A stretch of 5,483 bases of DNA from Prasinococcaceae sp. CCMP 1430 (Eukaryota > Plantae > Prasinodermophyta). The translations under genes and the position numbers were made by a program. This document shows positions 1 to 5,483 of this stretch, piece by piece. Every line of letters starts with the position of its first letter. Within the stretch, counting starts at the first letter, position 1. Under the pieces are notes generated by a model. It searched no databases. It had not been told where the DNA came from and was given only the letters and a program-made list of their open reading frames with translations. The stretch lies in contig RQSC01000451.1 of assembly GCA_013416795.1 (NCBI GenBank), positions 1 through 5,483 of the forward strand. The letters are read 5' to 3'.

Positions 1-62
1 CACACACGCACACGCACACGCACACGCACACGCACGCGCACGCACACACACACACACACGCA
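1..62. repeat. Compound (CA)n/(CACACG)n microsatellite, truncated by the window edge
   Basis: Positions 1-62 are a strict pyrimidine-purine alternation of CA and CG dinucleotides. Confidence 0.97.
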
Positions 63-85
63 AATGATGGCGAATCCGGATCCAT
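1..85 (-). CDS. Possible sixth acceptor-led unit (F), partial: MDPDSPSFA followed by (C-V/A)n from the microsatellite
   Basis: Minus strand reads ATTGTGCAG|ATG at 94-83, identical to the start context of A, B and C. The frame is open to the window edge. It lacks the MSES start and shows no finger, so coding status is uncertain. Confidence 0.3.
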   Translation of the reverse strand, partial: MDPDSPSFACVCVCACACVCVCVCVCVC

Positions 86-210
86 CTGCACAATGAACAT
101 TGCATGTCCAAAATCAAACAGTGGATGGCATGCATGAGATCAGGGCAACACAAATAGAAAGTAAAGAGGATGAGATATATAATAAAAAATAGCGGTCGCG
201 TCTTCATTAC
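86..210 (-). other. Putative spliceosomal intron (125 nt) ending at the ATG of unit F
   Basis: GCG|GTAATG at 210, pyrimidine tract CTCATCCTCTTTACTTTCTATTT, no AG for more than 110 nt before TTGTGCAG|ATG. Confidence 0.45.
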
Positions 211-283
211 CGCCGGTTTCCGCACGATAAAAAAAAAGAAACTCCGGCCGCCGCATTTCAAGGCTTTGCGCTTTTTCTATTCC

Positions 284-1048
284 TCACCCCCCACCACCAA
301 TAGGCGCCCGAACCTTGTCAAGCGAGACACCGACCTGTGGAGGCGTGGCCGCTTCAGGTACCTTCGTGGTCGACGCATGAGAGCCTTGTTTAGATTGGGA
401 CAGCGAAAGCGACTTTTGACAACTGTCCCCGCTGTTGCGCGAGCGCTCGATCCGTTGGCGCAACCGCCGCGGAAGATGGGGCAACGCAAGAATTCGGTTA
501 ATGGCTTCCTCGTCCCGCGCCGACGAACCCCCATCACGGGGCTTCCTGGCATCTACCTTAAAGTCAGGTGCCTTAAACATAAAATGGTTAACGAGCGAGT
601 AGAACCGCGCCACGTCCTCCCCTGACCACATCATCATCCATCCGACAATGACATCAGCAGCTTTCACAAAGACCTGGCTCTCATCCACGTCATCTGCCGA
701 CCCCACCCTGACCACCTCTGGGTCGTCGTGTCGCCTGATCCCAATGTTGACGTCGTTCGGCGAGTCATCGTTACACCTCGAAAGCCGTATGACCGCCTTT
801 TTCAGTTCATCACCCCCGTCCGCGAGAAAGACGTCCAACTGCACGCCGCCTTCCCATTCCACATGATCAACGAAATTGCGCAGCCTTGTGCAGAGGAGAT
901 CTCCGGCGTCAAGCACGATATGTTTCCCACAGAGGCCCCTCTCGGAAATTGCCAAATTCTTACATCCCCGAGTCCTGCACCTCCTCCTTGGCAAAATTTC
1001 AAAGGTCTTGAAGACGGGGTCACAATACAAGACGGCCGACTCGGACAT
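284..1048 (-). CDS. Paralog A, 254 aa, one C-x4-C-x10-C-x2-H putative zinc finger, basic and low-complexity C-terminus; function unknown
   Basis: Long ORF. Start reassigned to the MSES ATG shared by the paralogs. Motif CRTRGCKNLAISERGLCGKH at 979-920. Most divergent member. Confidence 0.8.
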   Translation of the reverse strand: MSESAVLYCDPVFKTFEILPRRRCRTRGCKNLAISERGLCGKHIVLDAGDLLCTRLRNFVDHVEWEGGVQLDVFLADGGDELKKAVIRLSRCNDDSPNDVNIGIRRHDDPEVVRVGSADDVDESQVFVKAADVIVGWMMMWSGEDVARFYSLVNHFMFKAPDFKVDARKPRDGGSSARDEEAINRILALPHLPRRLRQRIERSRNSGDSCQKSLSLSQSKQGSHASTTKVPEAATPPQVGVSLDKVRAPIGGGG

Positions 1049-1161
1049 CTGCACAATTTTTGCGATAAGGAAATGCATAGAAACGCGCCGCGATTGACTT
1101 CTTTATTAAATCAAACATATCAACATCACACATAACTCGTATCCCAAATTCTTAGACCTAC
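1049..1161 (-). other. Putative intron (113 nt) immediately before the ATG of A
   Basis: GCG|GTAGGTCTA donor-like site, CTTAT branch-like motif with A at -18, TTGTGCAG|ATG. Confidence 0.55.
1102..1107 (-). promoter_or_regulatory. AATAAA, candidate poly(A) signal for B
   Basis: TAATAAAG context, 53 nt before the ATG of A; position conserved in three spacers. Confidence 0.5.
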
Positions 1162-1183
1162 CGCAGCTGACATCTGATACTTG

Positions 1184-1209
1184 AGAGATGCGCCGGCGGC
1201 AGCATCTCT
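1184..1209 (-). repeat. Inverted repeat/hairpin type 2 (AGAGATGC-T-GCC-gcc-GGC-GCATCTCT)
   Basis: Perfect 8-bp outer arms plus a 3-bp inner stem after a one-base bulge. Confidence 0.8.
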
Positions 1210-1253
1210 GTCTCGGGATACGTGTTCTTACTAGGCCACTTTCTAGAATTACA

Positions 1254-1275
1254 AGATGCGGCCCAGGCCGCATCT
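1254..1275 (-). repeat. Inverted repeat/hairpin type 1 (AGATGCGGCC-nn-GGCCGCATCT)
   Basis: Perfect 10-bp arms with a 2-nt spacer; identical copy at 3474-3495. Confidence 0.9.
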
Positions 1276-1338
1276 CAAACTAATCAAGGCCCAACCATCA
1301 AATTTGAGCGATATCACTCCATCTTTTGGCGGAAATCA

Positions 1339-2229
1339 TCACCACAAAGATCGCATTTTCTCGTGCCAGTCCCTGCAGTTTTTGCAGCAATTCACGATCA
1401 GCATCCGCTGAACCTCCTTCTTCGCAACATCATCGATGTTCGCAAACATCTCCTCTTTTGCCCCCTCTAGTCTGGCCGCCTTGTTGTCAGGCTCGGATGC
1501 TGAGCCGGACGCGGAGCTCCTCGTCCGCCTGCGCGTGTCCGCCCTCATCAGAAACTCTTCACACAAAGTCTCCTTCTCTTCCTCGACAATCGCCTTCGCT
1601 CCATACACTACAGCCGCTACGATTTTGGCTGCGTCGTAGTTGCCCACACGATCGGACGCCAGCGGGATGTCAGAAAGTGCCGCGCAAAAGCGTTTATGGA
1701 AATCCACAACGTCGCTCTCACGGGCGTTTGCAAATGGCGTCGTCATCAAGAACTCCGTCAGCGCGGTCCTTACCCTGTCACGTTTACATAGCAGGTTTTC
1801 TGTACCTTCTGCTATGACGAGGCGAGTCGTGGCATCCACAACACACCATTGTTGAAGACTGGCGGAATGCCTCTTCACCACCTCAAGCCTGACCCCGACA
1901 ATCTCTGCACCGCTCAACTCCAAGATTACTTTCACATTCGGCATCTCACCGCCGCCCACGTCGGTGTAAATGTAGTTGAGGCCACGACTGACCACCACTT
2001 CAATGTGCCGATCAACCACCCCATGCTGCGGACAATACAAGTCAAATCCGGGAACGGTATGCTTGCAAGTCGACACCGCGCACTTCCGGGGGGCGCCAAT
2101 ACTGCGCGCCACACCCTCGACGTTGCGTTTCAACATCTTTTGGAGTGAAATGCGCTCTTTCTCCTGACACGATACCTTGGCACCAGATCCCTCGCCCGGC
2201 CCACCCTTGTTCCCACCCGACTCGGCCAT
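1339..2229 (-). CDS. Paralog B, 296 aa, C3H-type finger, charged helical C-terminus, basic NLS-like RRRTRS, CCxxC tail
   Basis: MAES start after TGCAG. CAVSTCKHTVPGFDLYCPQH at 2082-2023. Clearly alignable with C along its length (e.g. LCEEFLxRADTRRR, NKAARLEGAKEEMF). Confidence 0.88.
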   Translation of the reverse strand: MAESGGNKGGPGEGSGAKVSCQEKERISLQKMLKRNVEGVARSIGAPRKCAVSTCKHTVPGFDLYCPQHGVVDRHIEVVVSRGLNYIYTDVGGGEMPNVKVILELSGAEIVGVRLEVVKRHSASLQQWCVVDATTRLVIAEGTENLLCKRDRVRTALTEFLMTTPFANARESDVVDFHKRFCAALSDIPLASDRVGNYDAAKIVAAVVYGAKAIVEEEKETLCEEFLMRADTRRRTRSSASGSASEPDNKAARLEGAKEEMFANIDDVAKKEVQRMLIVNCCKNCRDWHEKMRSLW

Positions 2230-2344
2230 CTGCACAATTTTTGCGATGAGAGCAAATGCATAGAAAGGCGCCGCGATTGACTTCTTTATTATATCAAACA
2301 TATTAACAACACACATAACTCGCATTCCAAATTCTTAGACCTAC
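2230..2344 (-). other. Putative intron (115 nt) immediately before the ATG of B
   Basis: TCA|GTAGGTCTA, CTCAT with A at -18, TTGTGCAG|ATG. Confidence 0.55.
2285..2290 (-). promoter_or_regulatory. AATAAA, candidate poly(A) signal for C
   Basis: TAATAAAG context, 55 nt before the ATG of B. Confidence 0.5.
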
Positions 2345-2360
2345 TGACATCTGAAACTTG

Positions 2361-2386
2361 AGAGATACGCCGGCGGCAGCATCTCT
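2361..2386 (-). repeat. Hairpin type 2, second copy
   Basis: One substitution relative to 1184-1209, which gives a G-U pair in minus-strand RNA. Confidence 0.8.
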
Positions 2387-2476
2387 GCCTCACACCTCAA
2401 TATCACGACTTTCGTATTGGCTCGTCGTAACCGATGGCCACTTTACAGTTCCTAAAAGAAGCTCCCCAAGGCGCAT

Positions 2477-3355
2477 CTAGTCATCCGAATGGCCGTTTGT
2501 CTCGTTCCACTCCTTGCAGGCTTTGCAGCAACCAACCCGCTGCAGCCTGTTAACCTCGTTCTTCGCAGTTTCGTCAAGAATAGAAAACATCTCCTCTTTT
2601 GCCCCCTCTAGTCGGGCCGCCTTGTTGGCAGGCTCGGATGCGGAGCTCCTCTTCCTCCTGCGCGTGTCAGCCCTCAGCAGAAACTCTTCACACAGGATCG
2701 CCTTCTCTTCCTCCAAAAGCGCTTTCGCTCCAGACACCACAGCCGCAACGACTTTGCCCGCAGTCCATTCGCACACTTGCGGACGCATCAGTGGAATCTC
2801 CGAAAGTGCCGCATAAAGCATCTTATTGAAATCCATGACATCGCTGACTTCATTGTTTGCGACTGGCGTCGTCATTAAGAAGTCCGCTATCGCCCTCTCA
2901 CCATAGCCCTCGTCCCCTCGTCCCCCACCTTTCGCCATTGTCAGGCCAGTTCCGGCATCCACAACCACCCATTTGTCGTATCCGTACTTGCTTTCCTCTT
3001 GTTTCACTTCCTCAAAACGCACCCCAACCATCTTGCCAGCGCTCAACTCCAAGCAAAGCCGCAACAAGGTCGACTGTACGGTCAACCCCCCATCTTCGGC
3101 CGTGTACATCAACTGAAGGCCGCGCTCGGCCACCATTTCGATGTGCCGATCGATGACCCCGTGCTTCGGACAATACTTGTCAAGTCCGGGGGCGGGTAGA
3201 TTGCAAGTGGACACCGCACATTTCCGGGGCTTGCCAATACTGCGGGCCACACTCTCGATGTGGCTTTTCAAGCTGCTTTGGATCTTAAGGCGATCTTTCT
3301 CATCGCACGATAACTTTGCACCAGTTGCCTCTTCCGGCCCATCCGACTCGGACAT
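2477..3355 (-). CDS. Paralog C, 292 aa, C3H-type finger, NLS-like RRRKRS, CCxxC tail
   Basis: MSES start after TGCAG. CAVSTCNLPAPGLDKYCPKH at 3220-3161. Closest relative of B. Confidence 0.88.
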   Translation of the reverse strand: MSESDGPEEATGAKLSCDEKDRLKIQSSLKSHIESVARSIGKPRKCAVSTCNLPAPGLDKYCPKHGVIDRHIEMVAERGLQLMYTAEDGGLTVQSTLLRLCLELSAGKMVGVRFEEVKQEESKYGYDKWVVVDAGTGLTMAKGGGRGDEGYGERAIADFLMTTPVANNEVSDVMDFNKMLYAALSEIPLMRPQVCEWTAGKVVAAVVSGAKALLEEEKAILCEEFLLRADTRRRKRSSASEPANKAARLEGAKEEMFSILDETAKNEVNRLQRVGCCKACKEWNETNGHSDD

Positions 3356-3472
3356 CTGCACAATTGCCGCGATCAGAAAATACATTTATCAGAGTACTTT
3401 ATTAAAACAAATTACACATCTCTTCTCAAATTTCAAAGTATCGGGACATGTGTTCTTACTTGCTAGACTTAC
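3356..3472 (-). other. Putative intron (117 nt) immediately before the ATG of C
   Basis: CTT|GTAAGTCTA (consensus GTAAGT), CTGAT with A at -18, TTGTGCAG|ATG. A second donor-like GTAAGA lies at 3459. Confidence 0.6.
3398..3403 (-). promoter_or_regulatory. AATAAA, candidate poly(A) signal for D
   Basis: TAATAAAG context, 42 nt before the ATG of C, retained although the flanking sequence has diverged from the other two spacers. Confidence 0.5.
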
Positions 3473-3473
3473 A

Positions 3474-3495
3474 AGATGCGGCCCAGGCCGCATCT
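3474..3495 (-). repeat. Hairpin type 1, second copy
   Basis: Identical to 1254-1275. Ends 1 nt before the GTAAGT donor-like site. Confidence 0.9.
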
Positions 3496-3525
3496 CAGAC
3501 CCATCCAATTTGGGCGAGATCACTT

Positions 3526-4407
3526 CTAATAGTCGGACCCTTTTTTCAGGCGCTTGAACTTGGCTTCCAACCTATCCTCCTTCCAACCAATTCGCTTCAA
3601 AGAGAGCTCTGCGCTACTTTTGACCGACTCCCTCTCATCTTCCAAGCCCTCACGCACTCCCGCAATAATGAGCTCCTTCACGTCGACCGAGTCCGACTCC
3701 CCGATCGCTGACCTCGGGGGCAGTGGAACTGCGGGCCGAGACATCGCCTCACACATCGCCTTGTACAAGTCCTCCACCCCTCCACTCCCCTCTCCCTTGA
3801 GATAACCGGACAAAGCGGCGCCACATCTCCTTGCGGACGCTTCCAGGTCGTCCGACCCGAAGGACGCCTCTACCTTGGCATCGTTCACAATCACCCATTT
3901 GAAAGGCCCAACGCCCAGCTTGCCCCTCACGACAGCGAAGCGATGCATGTAAGGCGAGCAGGGGTCACCCGTCGGGTCGGTCGAGCATAAGATCGGCTCG
4001 AGGAACTCTACCAGACCGCCTGACACCCAAACCGAGCGATAGGTGTCTACATACGGCTTTGGGACCCCCCCTCCCGCTACATTGAAGACAAGAACCGGCA
4101 CGTCGTATTCTGGAAAACAGCCCTTCGCCTCCGGTTTGTCCAACTCCGGCAGGAAACCGAGGCCGCGCTCAAGCACCGCCTCAAGCTTCCCGCCCCACTC
4201 CTCGTGCTCGGTACAGCGGACACGGAAACCCGTTACATTGATATCACACCCAGGCACCCAACAACTCCCGTCCCGATTGATCACGTGGTTGATGCGATCC
4301 CCCAAATTTCGTTTCATCCTCTGGTGGTCCTTGCAAAACTGGCCAAGCCCCTCGATTTCCTTCACACAACCCGTGATCTTGCACTTTACATCTTCTGACT
4401 CCGACAT
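3526..4407 (-). CDS. Paralog D, 293 aa, two C3H-type fingers, basic C-terminus (KFKRLKK)
   Basis: MSES ATG at 4407; the track's TTG start lies within the acceptor. Fingers at 4383-4324 and 4263-4204. Shares GLGFLP, PVLVFNVAGGGVPK, DTYxSV and GPFKWVIVxDA with E. Confidence 0.88.
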   Translation of the reverse strand: MSESEDVKCKITGCVKEIEGLGQFCKDHQRMKRNLGDRINHVINRDGSCWVPGCDINVTGFRVRCTEHEEWGGKLEAVLERGLGFLPELDKPEAKGCFPEYDVPVLVFNVAGGGVPKPYVDTYRSVWVSGGLVEFLEPILCSTDPTGDPCSPYMHRFAVVRGKLGVGPFKWVIVNDAKVEASFGSDDLEASARRCGAALSGYLKGEGSGGVEDLYKAMCEAMSRPAVPLPPRSAIGESDSVDVKELIIAGVREGLEDERESVKSSAELSLKRIGWKEDRLEAKFKRLKKGSDY

Positions 4408-4432
4408 CTGCAAAATAAACAGTAAAAATCAC
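4408..4432 (-). promoter_or_regulatory. 3' splice acceptor with polypyrimidine tract before the ATG of D
   Basis: GTGATTTTTACTGTTTATTTTGCAG|ATG. The donor is unclear; the best candidate is GTAATT at 4485. Confidence 0.65.
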
Positions 4433-4611
4433 GCCCTCAATTGAGAATGGAGATTTTGACACCGTATGGCAATCTCGACAATTACTGGCTTATTAACTGC
4501 CAGGGTAAAAGCTTGTATTAACAATAAATATTTATGGCATGCCTTGATTTTCAGCACAATCCGAAATACTAAAAAAACCATTTATATTAAAAATATATTA
4601 TCAGCACTAAA

Positions 4612-4690
4612 TTGGCAAATCCGAAAGAAGCGGCCCAAGGCGCATCTCAGCTCGAGGTGCATTTGGCAAATCCGAAAGAAGCGGCCCAAG
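4612..4690. repeat. 28-bp exact direct repeat (4612-4639 and 4663-4690, period 51)
   Basis: TTGGCAAATCCGAAAGAAGCGGCCCAAG occurs twice; each copy runs into a degenerate hairpin element. Confidence 0.95.
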
Positions 4691-4694
4691 CCGC

Positions 4695-4729
4695 AACTTG
4701 GAGTGAAAGCCTTTAACTTGGTGTGAAAG
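4695..4729. repeat. 15-bp direct repeat, period 20
   Basis: AACTTGGAGTGAAAG (4695-4709) and AACTTGGTGTGAAAG (4715-4729). Confidence 0.85.
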
Positions 4730-4783
4730 GGTTTCTCAGCATCCCAAAATAAGGGTCACTAAGCATCCGTTGATTCGCTCCTT

Positions 4784-5476
4784 TTACATTTCATACCATT
4801 CTCGTCCCACCTGGTATTTGCCTTTCGGTGGAAGTGCGGTCAGGGGCATGGCCTGACATATCTCCTTGTACAACTCGTCTAAGCTATAATCTTCAGTGCG
4901 GTCACGAGTGAGTTCAATCTCGCAGTGGGATGCGGACCACCACAAATCCATCGGGTCATGAGCACTTGATCGCGCCACCAGCTCGGCATCCTTCACGATC
5001 ACCCATTTGAAAGGCCCTGGACCCAAGCCCTTCTGGATATTACATGCATAGTGGTTTACAGGCACAACCGGAAAATCTAACATTCCGAGGGACGTGTAGA
5101 CCGAGCCATACGTGTCCACCCTCACTTTTGGGACCCCCCCTCCCGCGACATTGAAAACTAGAACCGGCTTGTTTAGTTTGGGCCAATGCCTCGCTTCCTC
5201 CGGCCCGTCGAACTGCCGCAACTCGATATACGGCAGGAACCCGAGACCGGTCATAAGCACCTGGCAAAACTTGGTGTCTACCCAATGGTCGTGCTGCTCA
5301 CAAAAGATCGACGTACCCCCAACCCTCGCTACACAGAGGGTCATTGCACAAGTCACGTCCTTGTCTTTGTAGATCCGGTCCATCAGATTAGTCCAGTGGT
5401 CAAGGCAAAACCCTCCTTCCTCAATCTTCTTCACACAACCCGTGATCTTGCACTTTACATCTTCTGACTCCGACAT
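4784..5476 (-). CDS. Paralog E, 230 aa, two C3H-type fingers, lacks the charged C-terminal extension of D
   Basis: MSES ATG at 5476. Fingers at 5452-5396 (x9 spacing) and 5350-5291. Collinear with D up to the LPP motif. Confidence 0.86.
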   Translation of the reverse strand: MSESEDVKCKITGCVKKIEEGGFCLDHWTNLMDRIYKDKDVTCAMTLCVARVGGTSIFCEQHDHWVDTKFCQVLMTGLGFLPYIELRQFDGPEEARHWPKLNKPVLVFNVAGGGVPKVRVDTYGSVYTSLGMLDFPVVPVNHYACNIQKGLGPGPFKWVIVKDAELVARSSAHDPMDLWWSASHCEIELTRDRTEDYSLDELYKEICQAMPLTALPPKGKYQVGREWYEM

Positions 5477-5483
5477 CTGCAAA
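5477..5483 (-). promoter_or_regulatory. 3' splice acceptor before the ATG of E (truncated by the window edge)
   Basis: TTTGCAG|ATG, identical to D. Confidence 0.55.

Follow-up and report, generated by a model that had tools for sequence, protein, structure and literature searches.

How do the genes of a densely packed array obtain the 5' ends of their messages if each of them begins directly behind the same short motif? This question is posed by contig RQSC01000451.1, a DNA sequence of 5,483 nt that was analysed over its whole length and is called the window below. Paralogous genes without introns follow one another head to tail in the window and form one family, which has grown by tandem duplication with a period of ~1.07-1.18 kb. 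The window contains five uninterrupted open reading frames (ORFs), A to E, and a sixth, apparently decayed start (Z), all on the same strand. In a first-pass annotation of this DNA, five uninterrupted ORFs 170-376 bp apart had been described, each preceded by T(G/T)TGCAG, and splicing at this motif had been proposed to provide the 5' ends. With respect to the layout, this description was accurate: the ORFs specify proteins of 230-296 amino acids (aa) and are separated by spacers of 290, 247, 170, and 376 nt, with 198 nt below A. The genes are encoded by the minus strand; the coordinates quoted in the annotation (85, 1048, 2229, 3355, 4407, and 5476) give the A of each minus-strand ATG in plus-strand numbering. 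Regarding the motif, the single best reading of the sequence is that ATT(G/T)TGCAG acts as a 3' splice acceptor to which a leader is joined, either a trans-spliced or a shared one. With a probability of about 0.4, this assignment is tentative.

Sequence conservation at the start codons

The minus strand has six copies of the core sequence TGCAGATG and the plus strand none, and each copy is located at a cassette start. Under a first-order Markov model of the minus strand, 0.20 copies are expected, and the maximum reached in 2000 simulations was three. T(G/T)TGCAG|ATG is thus present at six out of six starts, as had been claimed for this array, but the conserved block is longer than originally stated and reads ATT(G/T)TGCAG|ATG-(T/G)C(C/G)-GAG-TC. 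In the case of E, just seven upstream bases fall inside the window. Since A, B, and C have homologous upstream regions, these three were treated as one lineage, resulting in three independent lineages (n = 3), A/B/C, D/E, and Z. Across them, ATT(G/T)TGCAG is retained at 9-10 of 10 positions, while nothing upstream of -10 can be aligned. Around the junction, A/B/C and D/E agree at 18 of 21 nt. At codons 2-4 (MSES), it is the peptide that is retained, with synonymous differences (TCC/TCG, TCG/TCA). As conservation downstream of the junction is therefore at the peptide level, the upstream ATT(G/T)TGCAG appears to be constrained at the level of nucleotides. Its retention between lineages that are otherwise unalignable upstream indicates more than common ancestry, and by these comparisons the motif is judged to be real, non-random, and under selection.

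Could the motif nevertheless be a remnant without function that descends from the ancestral cassette and has been homogenised by tandem duplication and gene conversion? This is considered improbable. All cassettes are indeed paralogues: B and C are 55% identical, D and E 44%, the B/C and D/E profiles could be aligned by hhalign over 175 columns (E = 7e-5), and one type of finger is shared by five out of five proteins. An identical tract resembling the outcome of conversion is also present at the 5' ends of D and E. It covers the first 48 nt of the two genes (4360-4407 versus 5429-5476), which are 100% identical including synonymous sites, although the genes as a whole show a synonymous divergence (dS) of 0.83; such a tract indicates either local gene conversion or an element acting at the nucleotide level. 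However, upstream of -10 and downstream of codon 5, A/B/C and D/E are unalignable or ~25% identical, and conversion requires flanking homology, which is absent here. The AG-free zone in front of the motif, described below, would also be left unexplained. The earlier proposal that shared ancestry accounts for some of the conservation is correct in so far as all cassettes are paralogues, but it does not account for the block of 9-10 nt kept between unalignable lineages.

The hexamer CAGATG is found nine times on the minus strand, at the six starts, at one internal site by chance, and at two relic starts. The latter, (A/T)TCAG|ATGTCAG, are located just 3' of a palindrome designated h2 and open conserved mini-ORFs of 15 codons (MSAAVGLRIWDTSYV and MSVGLRIWNASYVCC). 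Their appearance is that of collapsed cassettes, and a role as upstream ORFs or as extra acceptors is conceivable. Z looks like the decayed start of a cassette as well: its reading frame meets a (CACACG)n microsatellite after nine codons, and the DNA past its ATG resembles spacer sequence.

Relics of this kind have a bearing on another possibility, namely that the motif marks a cassette boundary in the DNA, as a recombination junction or as a protein-binding half-site, AGATG(C/T/G)C, serving gene conversion or shuffling. A comparable case is the conserved junction element with which the MSG genes of Pneumocystis start. A boundary function is unlikely, but several observations are in line with it. 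AGATG is over-represented ~3-fold on the sense strand and is contained in the arms of the spacer palindromes (GAGATGCGGCC) as well as in the start motif (GCAGATGKCC). Collapsed cassettes, in which the start motif is fused to spacer sequence, are seen at ATG 1173, at ATG 2350, and probably at ATG 85. The identical 48 nt of D and E, despite a dS of 0.83, suggest local conversion, the spacers are conserved to 93% versus 76-85% for coding sequence, and the ratio of non-synonymous to synonymous changes (dN/dS) is ~0.6. On the other hand, each cassette has its own ATG, stop codon, and plausible 3' signals, and none resembles a silent donor copy. With their zinc fingers and an RRRxR tract, the proteins look nuclear and not like surface antigens, for which a signal peptide or a membrane segment is missing, and neither a recombinase nor an expression site is located within the window.

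Acceptor-like signals and the promoter alternative

At all six sites, the ATG is directly preceded by CAG as part of T(G/T)TGCAG, which agrees with the YAG of spliceosomal 3' splice sites. In eukaryotic translation initiation, a purine at -3 is near-universal, and C at this position makes a poor start context. C is found at -3 in six out of six sites, where it matches YAG, and the first-pass judgement that the context is poor for initiation applies to every one of them. The sites are also preceded by AG-free runs of 47, 49, 39, 26, and 114 nt, which rank 3rd, 2nd, 5th, 17th, and 1st among the 69 AG-to-AG gaps of the spacers, with a median gap in the same spacers of 7.5 (Mann-Whitney p = 0.0003; p = 0.0014 with A and B counted once). 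An AG exclusion zone is therefore present. Candidates for a yUnAy branch point could be detected at -18 in A, B, and C (CTTAT, CTCAT, and CTGAT, in agreement with the CTNAT annotated before) and at -16 in D (TTTAC). The T-rich tract noted in front of D is apparent as well, with 76% pyrimidine at -20..-4 versus 47% in A-C; the value for Z is 53%.

Upstream ATGs are present at -30 (out of frame in B) and, in Z, at -20 and -15, and splicing would remove them. In Caenorhabditis elegans, trans-splicing of spliced leader (SL) 1 shortens the native 5' untranslated regions (UTRs) and thereby leaves fewer upstream AUGs (PMC5580712). A donor-like GT above threshold was found in only one of the five spacers, C-D (GTAAGT), and in none of the other four. 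Local 5'-UTR introns were rejected as a general solution on these grounds, and the local intron offered as one option by the first-pass annotation is disfavoured. Since a usable local donor is missing in four of five spacers, the leader would come from outside the spacer.

According to the acceptor reading, minus-strand transcription would run through the whole array, and each cistron would acquire its 5' end by the joining of a leader from elsewhere exactly at CAG|ATG; an SL added in trans or a single upstream exon common to the cistrons could serve as this leader. The cistron upstream would end at AATAAA or at A/T-rich signals 40-80 nt before the acceptor, and splicing would eliminate upstream ATGs located 13-50 nt ahead of the start. 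That splicing occurs, and where the leader originates, we infer from the signals described above. AATAAA is indeed found 41-53 nt before the acceptor AG in three of five spacers, and A/T-rich variants are present in the others. Together with the one-strand layout and a G over C skew that continues through the spacers, the position of AATAAA before three acceptors fits the processing of a longer precursor. Genes on the same strand, spacers of 170-376 nt, and a 3'-end signal before the acceptors are also the layout of an SL operon.

Several points weigh against an acceptor function. The pyrimidine tract of A, B, and C is weak, with the 47% pyrimidine at -20..-4 given above and AAAAA at -13..-9. 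The branch motif carries little information, being expected by chance about once per 64 nt, and in A/B/C it is shared by descent. All six sites are paralogous, and the effective sample consists of three lineages, one of which, Z, is probably dead. An Rfam scan of the window detected no SL RNA or other Rfam family. In A and B, finally, TAATAAAG at -60 and GCA(-26)TTTCC have the spacing of a TATA box and an initiator. Of the acceptor signature as first proposed, YAG and the AG-free zone (p = 0.0014) were recovered, whereas the pyrimidine tract is strong in D and weak in A/B/C. The proposal that the 5' ends arise by splicing is not contradicted by these tests, but the TATA- and initiator-like elements fit a private promoter.

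A private promoter for each gene, located in the A/T-rich spacer and giving rise to an unspliced leader of ~25 nt, would be the ordinary compact layout of a protist or a large DNA virus. Doubtful as it is, this explanation is nearly as likely as the acceptor. A/T boxes of the TAATAAAG type would be TATA-like, ATT(G/T)TGCAG would be an initiator in the 5' UTR, a downstream promoter element, or a lineage-specific start context, and the palindrome 0-86 nt past the stop codon would form or terminate the 3' end of the preceding gene. In A and B, TAATAAAG starts at -60 and is followed 30-34 nt downstream by the initiator-like GCA(-26)TTTCC, which would result in a leader of 26 nt, with the upstream ATG at -30 positioned shortly ahead of the transcription start. 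The spacers are A/T-richer than the genes (40-45% versus 55-60% GC), and TGCAGA fits the initiator consensus BBCABW. Orphan, tandemly duplicated, and fast-evolving genes are typical of giant viruses, and a palindrome after every stop codon is reminiscent of their 'hairpin rule' (PMC4402537). However, the distance of the A/T box to the ATG varies, being ~-60 in A and B, -49 in C, -79 in D, and -97 in Z. The C at -3, a poor initiation context, is not explained by a promoter, and the AG-free zone has no role in it. We know of no initiator or viral promoter with the sequence ATT(G/T)TGCAG. Moreover, the palindromes are conserved in sequence and not just in shape, several of them fold poorly, unlike Mimivirus hairpins, and relatives are missing from IMG/VR. 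With private promoters, the window would represent a compact gene array of the ordinary kind whose start context is unusual. Should the acceptor reading be true, the organism or virus from which the DNA derives builds each mRNA 5' end by splicing a leader to the start codon, and a new, rapidly diversifying zinc-finger-like family would be expressed via a trans-splicing or shared-leader system whose exact junctions can be tested.

Comparison with known systems

The array was compared with systems in which similar arrangements have been described. SL trans-spliced polycistronic units, such as the operons of nematodes and tunicates or the clusters of kinetoplastids, share with it the dense packing of genes on one strand and an AAUAAA-type signal some tens of nt before a (U)nNCAG acceptor. 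In these units, the acceptor lies at or near the ATG, the leader constitutes the whole 5' UTR, and upstream AUGs are removed (PMC5580712). The array differs from them by the pyrimidine tract, which is weak at three of five sites, and from metazoans with operons by its GC content of 52%, its intron-less genes, and codons that prefer to end in G. It also contains AATAAA, whereas AAUAAA is missing in kinetoplastids and dinoflagellates. Of the groups that combine tandem arrays with SL trans-splicing, dinoflagellates are the best known. Their 5' UTRs, however, are 51-369 nt long and AAUAAA is lacking (PMC2488372); a tandem array of the dinoflagellate type was rejected as a model for these reasons, which also counts against an acceptor function.

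The array resembles the adenovirus major late unit in having an acceptor sequence directly at the ATG, successive ORFs on one strand, and AATAAA signals. In that unit, a shared leader is spliced to acceptors abutting the ORF, for example ...TTGCAG|ATG at the fiber gene. Differences are the paralogous cassettes with a signal after each of them, the microsatellite and the repeated palindromes, the position of leader and donor, which would be outside the window, and the missing homology to adenoviral or other viral proteins. In plants, the 5'-UTR introns of polyubiquitin and EF1a-type genes end at TGCAG|ATG. The acceptor sequence exactly at the start codon is thus identical, but such introns need a local first exon, a promoter, and a donor, and the spacers of the array are only 170-376 nt long and in four of five cases without a donor.

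In Drosophila mod(mdg4) and lola, tandem units start with a 3' splice site, carry a variable zinc-finger module, and have their own 3' end, an arrangement that the array resembles; some of these variable exons also have their own promoters and short outrons (PMC13490949). In analogy, the cassettes could be alternative 3'-terminal coding exons, to one of which common 5' exons from outside the window are spliced at a time, in cis or in trans, the ATG being an internal Met codon. Each unit opens with an acceptor-like site, always in the same phase, codes for a variable zinc-finger module, and has its own stop codon followed by A/T-rich 3' signals. Promoters plus short outrons as in mod(mdg4) would reconcile the TATA-like boxes with an acceptor (PMC13490949). 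Nevertheless, this interpretation is very improbable. Every unit of the array opens with ATG, which is invariant in six out of six sites and needless for an internal codon. The finger is of a different type and below the Pfam threshold, and FLYWCH, C2H2, or BTB signatures are missing. An exhaustive phmmer search with B did not reveal a longer protein that contains it, and neither CpG nor codon usage points to an arthropod.

For Mimiviridae, the 'hairpin rule' describes a palindrome shortly after stop codons (PMC4402537). In the array, a palindrome is located 0-86 nt past each stop codon, and the genes are compact, tandem orphans on the same strand. Unlike in Mimiviridae, the palindromes are copies of one GC-rich sequence, some of which have lost their pairing. 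Known promoters of nucleocytoplasmic large DNA viruses are A/T-rich, unlike the motif at the ATG. As for a gene unit of Nucleocytoviricota, viral hallmark genes are missing from the window, which holds only the array family, and no relatives were found in IMG/VR, PHROGs, or INPHARED. A leader-dependent expression unit in a lineage or virus from which such units are not yet described would be a further variant, either an 'operon' of a protist or nuclear giant virus in which a common leader is spliced exactly to each ATG, or mod(mdg4)/lola-like alternative zinc-finger 3' exons outside the arthropods, with the palindrome as a processing or selection signal; there is only a small chance that this applies.

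Protein family, source, and further elements of the window

The ORFs show a GC content of 0.63-0.69 at third codon positions versus 0.39-0.45 at second positions. Based on this contrast, on five open frames of 230-296 codons, and on a dN/dS of ~0.6, they represent real coding sequence. The same dN/dS (dS 0.56 for B/C and 0.83 for D/E) suggests that the family is weakly constrained or partly diversifying. Identity between lineages is ~22-27%, but all five proteins have an invariant C-x4-C-x10-C-x2-H pattern, an RGL/GG core, and the MSES N-terminus. A signal peptide or a membrane segment was not detected in any of the five, and B and C contain a basic RRRxR tract, which suggests soluble, possibly nuclear proteins.

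Pfam searches with whole proteins and finger pieces yielded only sub-threshold hits to Zf_WRKY19, CxC6, and zf-C3Hc3H, and no FLYWCH, C2H2, or BTB signature. The best Zf_WRKY19 (PF24906) match, in E, scored 14.7 bits (E = 0.027), below the gathering cut-off of 27 bits; the finger spacing of this domain is similar to C-x4-C-x10-C-x2-H, though the match is below threshold. AlphaFold models were of low confidence, with predicted local distance difference test (pLDDT) values of 31 and 43. In homologue searches, neither D nor A nor the D/E profile identified a relative, and the same is true of the exhaustive phmmer search of B against 1.84 billion representative proteins, carried out without a length filter. 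Look-ups of the exact proteins, including alternative start codons, gave no match. A protein profile and three DNA patterns detected no relative in IMG/VR, where 64 pattern matches proved to be single chance matches. Fourteen matches in JGI metagenomes belonged mostly to one apparently conserved, unrelated gene and showed no relation by blast. Only chance matches were obtained from GTDB genomes, and PHROGs, INPHARED, and PLSDB were without a relative. Judged by these searches, the array specifies a true orphan family of small, fast-evolving zinc-finger-like proteins. The novelty of the window lies mainly in this family, which is found in an already known kind of arrangement. Being without detectable relatives among ~1.8 billion representative proteins, its origin is worth tracing. 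Four loci of the uncultivated virus genome (UViG) 2636416072 in IMG/VR share an identical 60-nt stretch with TTTGCAGATGTCCGAGTCGG; the stretch is a repeat within a genome that is not related to the window.

The window has an overall GC content of 52%, with 40-45% in the spacers and 55-60% in the ORFs. Observed over expected CpG is 1.00, and the value for TpA is 0.56. Codons ending in G are preferred: AGG is used 33 times versus twice for AGA, and GCG, TCG, ACG, CCG, GTG, and GGG lead. On the sense strand, the skew of G over C amounts to 0.39 at codon position 1, 0.20 at position 3, and 0.13 in the spacers overall (~0.2 in three of them). Taken together, these values form an unusual compositional signature, which might be of use in tracing the source. 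A Shine-Dalgarno sequence is not present in the window, and sigma-70 promoters and intrinsic terminators are not in excess. These absences, together with the microsatellite and the AATAAA motifs, speak against bacteria and in favour of a eukaryote or a nuclear eukaryotic virus. Nuclear viruses of protists that use host splicing are now known (PMC12768974), which makes a viral source possible.

Other kinds of source were considered and rejected. Bacterial interpretations as integron cassettes, repetitive extragenic palindromic (REP)-like palindromes, or an operon do not agree with the microsatellite, the absent Shine-Dalgarno sequence, the lack of promoter or terminator excess, and the lack of prokaryotic relatives. 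Integron attC sites are 55-140 nt long and imperfect, have RYYYAAC/GTTRRRY cores, and separate unrelated promoterless ORFs. For an integron gene-cassette array, the palindromes of the window are too different, being 22-23 nt long, near perfect, and without core sites; the ORFs are paralogous, and no plasmid or prokaryote matches were obtained. Bulk vertebrate DNA was dismissed because of the CpG value of 1.00 and the lack of matches, and a human origin of the contig is likewise not assumed. One end of the contig is formed by a microsatellite (1-62) and the other by the D/E repeat. The 5483-nt sequence is probably a fragment from a short-read assembly of a larger genome, broken at repeats.

The features of the window are compiled in Table 1. 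One GC-rich palindrome, GAGATGCGGCC-YGG-GCCGCATCTC, is present in every spacer 0-86 nt past the stop codon, some copies being degenerate. Its arms share the core AGATG(C/T/G)C with the motif at the ORF starts. A 3'-end hairpin, a protein-binding site, or a recombination signal are candidates for its role.

Table 1. Features of the window. Positions refer to the plus strand; empty cells, no entry.
Feature	Position	Strand	Remarks
ORF A	284-1048	minus	254 aa, MSES..., one C-x4-C-x10-C-x2-H finger; most diverged family member
ORF B	1339-2229	minus	296 aa, MAES..., 55% identical to C
ORF C	2477-3355	minus	292 aa, MSES...
ORF D	3526-4407	minus	293 aa, MSESEDV..., two C-x4-C-x10-C-x2-H fingers, 44% identical to E
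ORF E	4784-5476	minus	230 aa; first 48 nt identical to D
Z, putative decayed cassette start CATTGTGCAG|ATG	83-94 (ATG 85-83)	minus	no intact ORF after it
(CACACG)n / (CA)n microsatellite	1-62		at contig end; entered by reading frame of Z
Acceptor-like block AATTGTGCAG	1049-1057	minus	directly 5' of A ATG
Acceptor-like block AATTGTGCAG	2230-2238	minus	5' of B ATG
Acceptor-like block AATTGTGCAG	3356-3364	minus	5' of C ATG
Acceptor-like block TATTTTGCAG	4408-4416	minus	5' of D ATG; strong pyrimidine tract
TTTGCAG	5477-5483	minus	5' of E ATG; cut by window end
Putative relic start TATCAG|ATGTCAG (ATG 1173)	1171-1176	minus	opens 15-codon mini-ORF
Putative relic start TTTCAG|ATGTCAG (ATG 2350)	2348-2353	minus	opens 15-codon mini-ORF
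AATAAA inside TAATAAAG	1102-1107	minus	-59..-54 from A ATG; could be poly(A) signal of B or TATA-like box of A
AATAAA inside TATAATAAAG	2285-2290	minus	upstream of B
AATAAA	3398-3403	minus	-48..-43 from C ATG
Degenerate palindrome copy	238-259		downstream of A stop; T9 run follows on sense strand
Palindrome h2, GAGATGCTGCCGCCGGCGCATCT on sense strand	1185-1207		
Palindrome h1, AGATGCGGCCTGGGCCGCATCT on sense strand	1254-1275		64 nt 3' of B stop
Palindrome h2, second copy	2362-2384		94% identical to 1167-1214 over repeat
Degenerate palindrome	2457-2478		overlaps C stop
Palindrome	3474-3495		31 nt 3' of D stop; GTAAGT directly after on sense strand
Two palindrome copies (4626-4648, 4677-4698)	4626-4698		51-nt tandem duplication, 3' of E stop

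Two of the spacers contain donor-like strings directly after the palindrome, the consensus-like GTAAGT at 3468-3473 (minus strand, after the copy at 3474-3495) and GTAATT at ~1248-1253 in spacer A-B. About 45-60 nt beyond them, AAUUUG(G/A) resembling an Sm site is found, a layout similar to that of an SL RNA. The combination of palindrome, GTAAGT, and AAUUUG(G/A) in spacers C-D and A-B was discarded as an SL RNA candidate, because the donor is not conserved in B-C and D-E.

The spacers past B and C (1068-1214 versus 2251-2391) are 93-94% identical, while the adjoining coding sequences reach 76-85% with a dS of 0.56. The spacer DNA after these two genes is therefore more conserved than the genes beside it.

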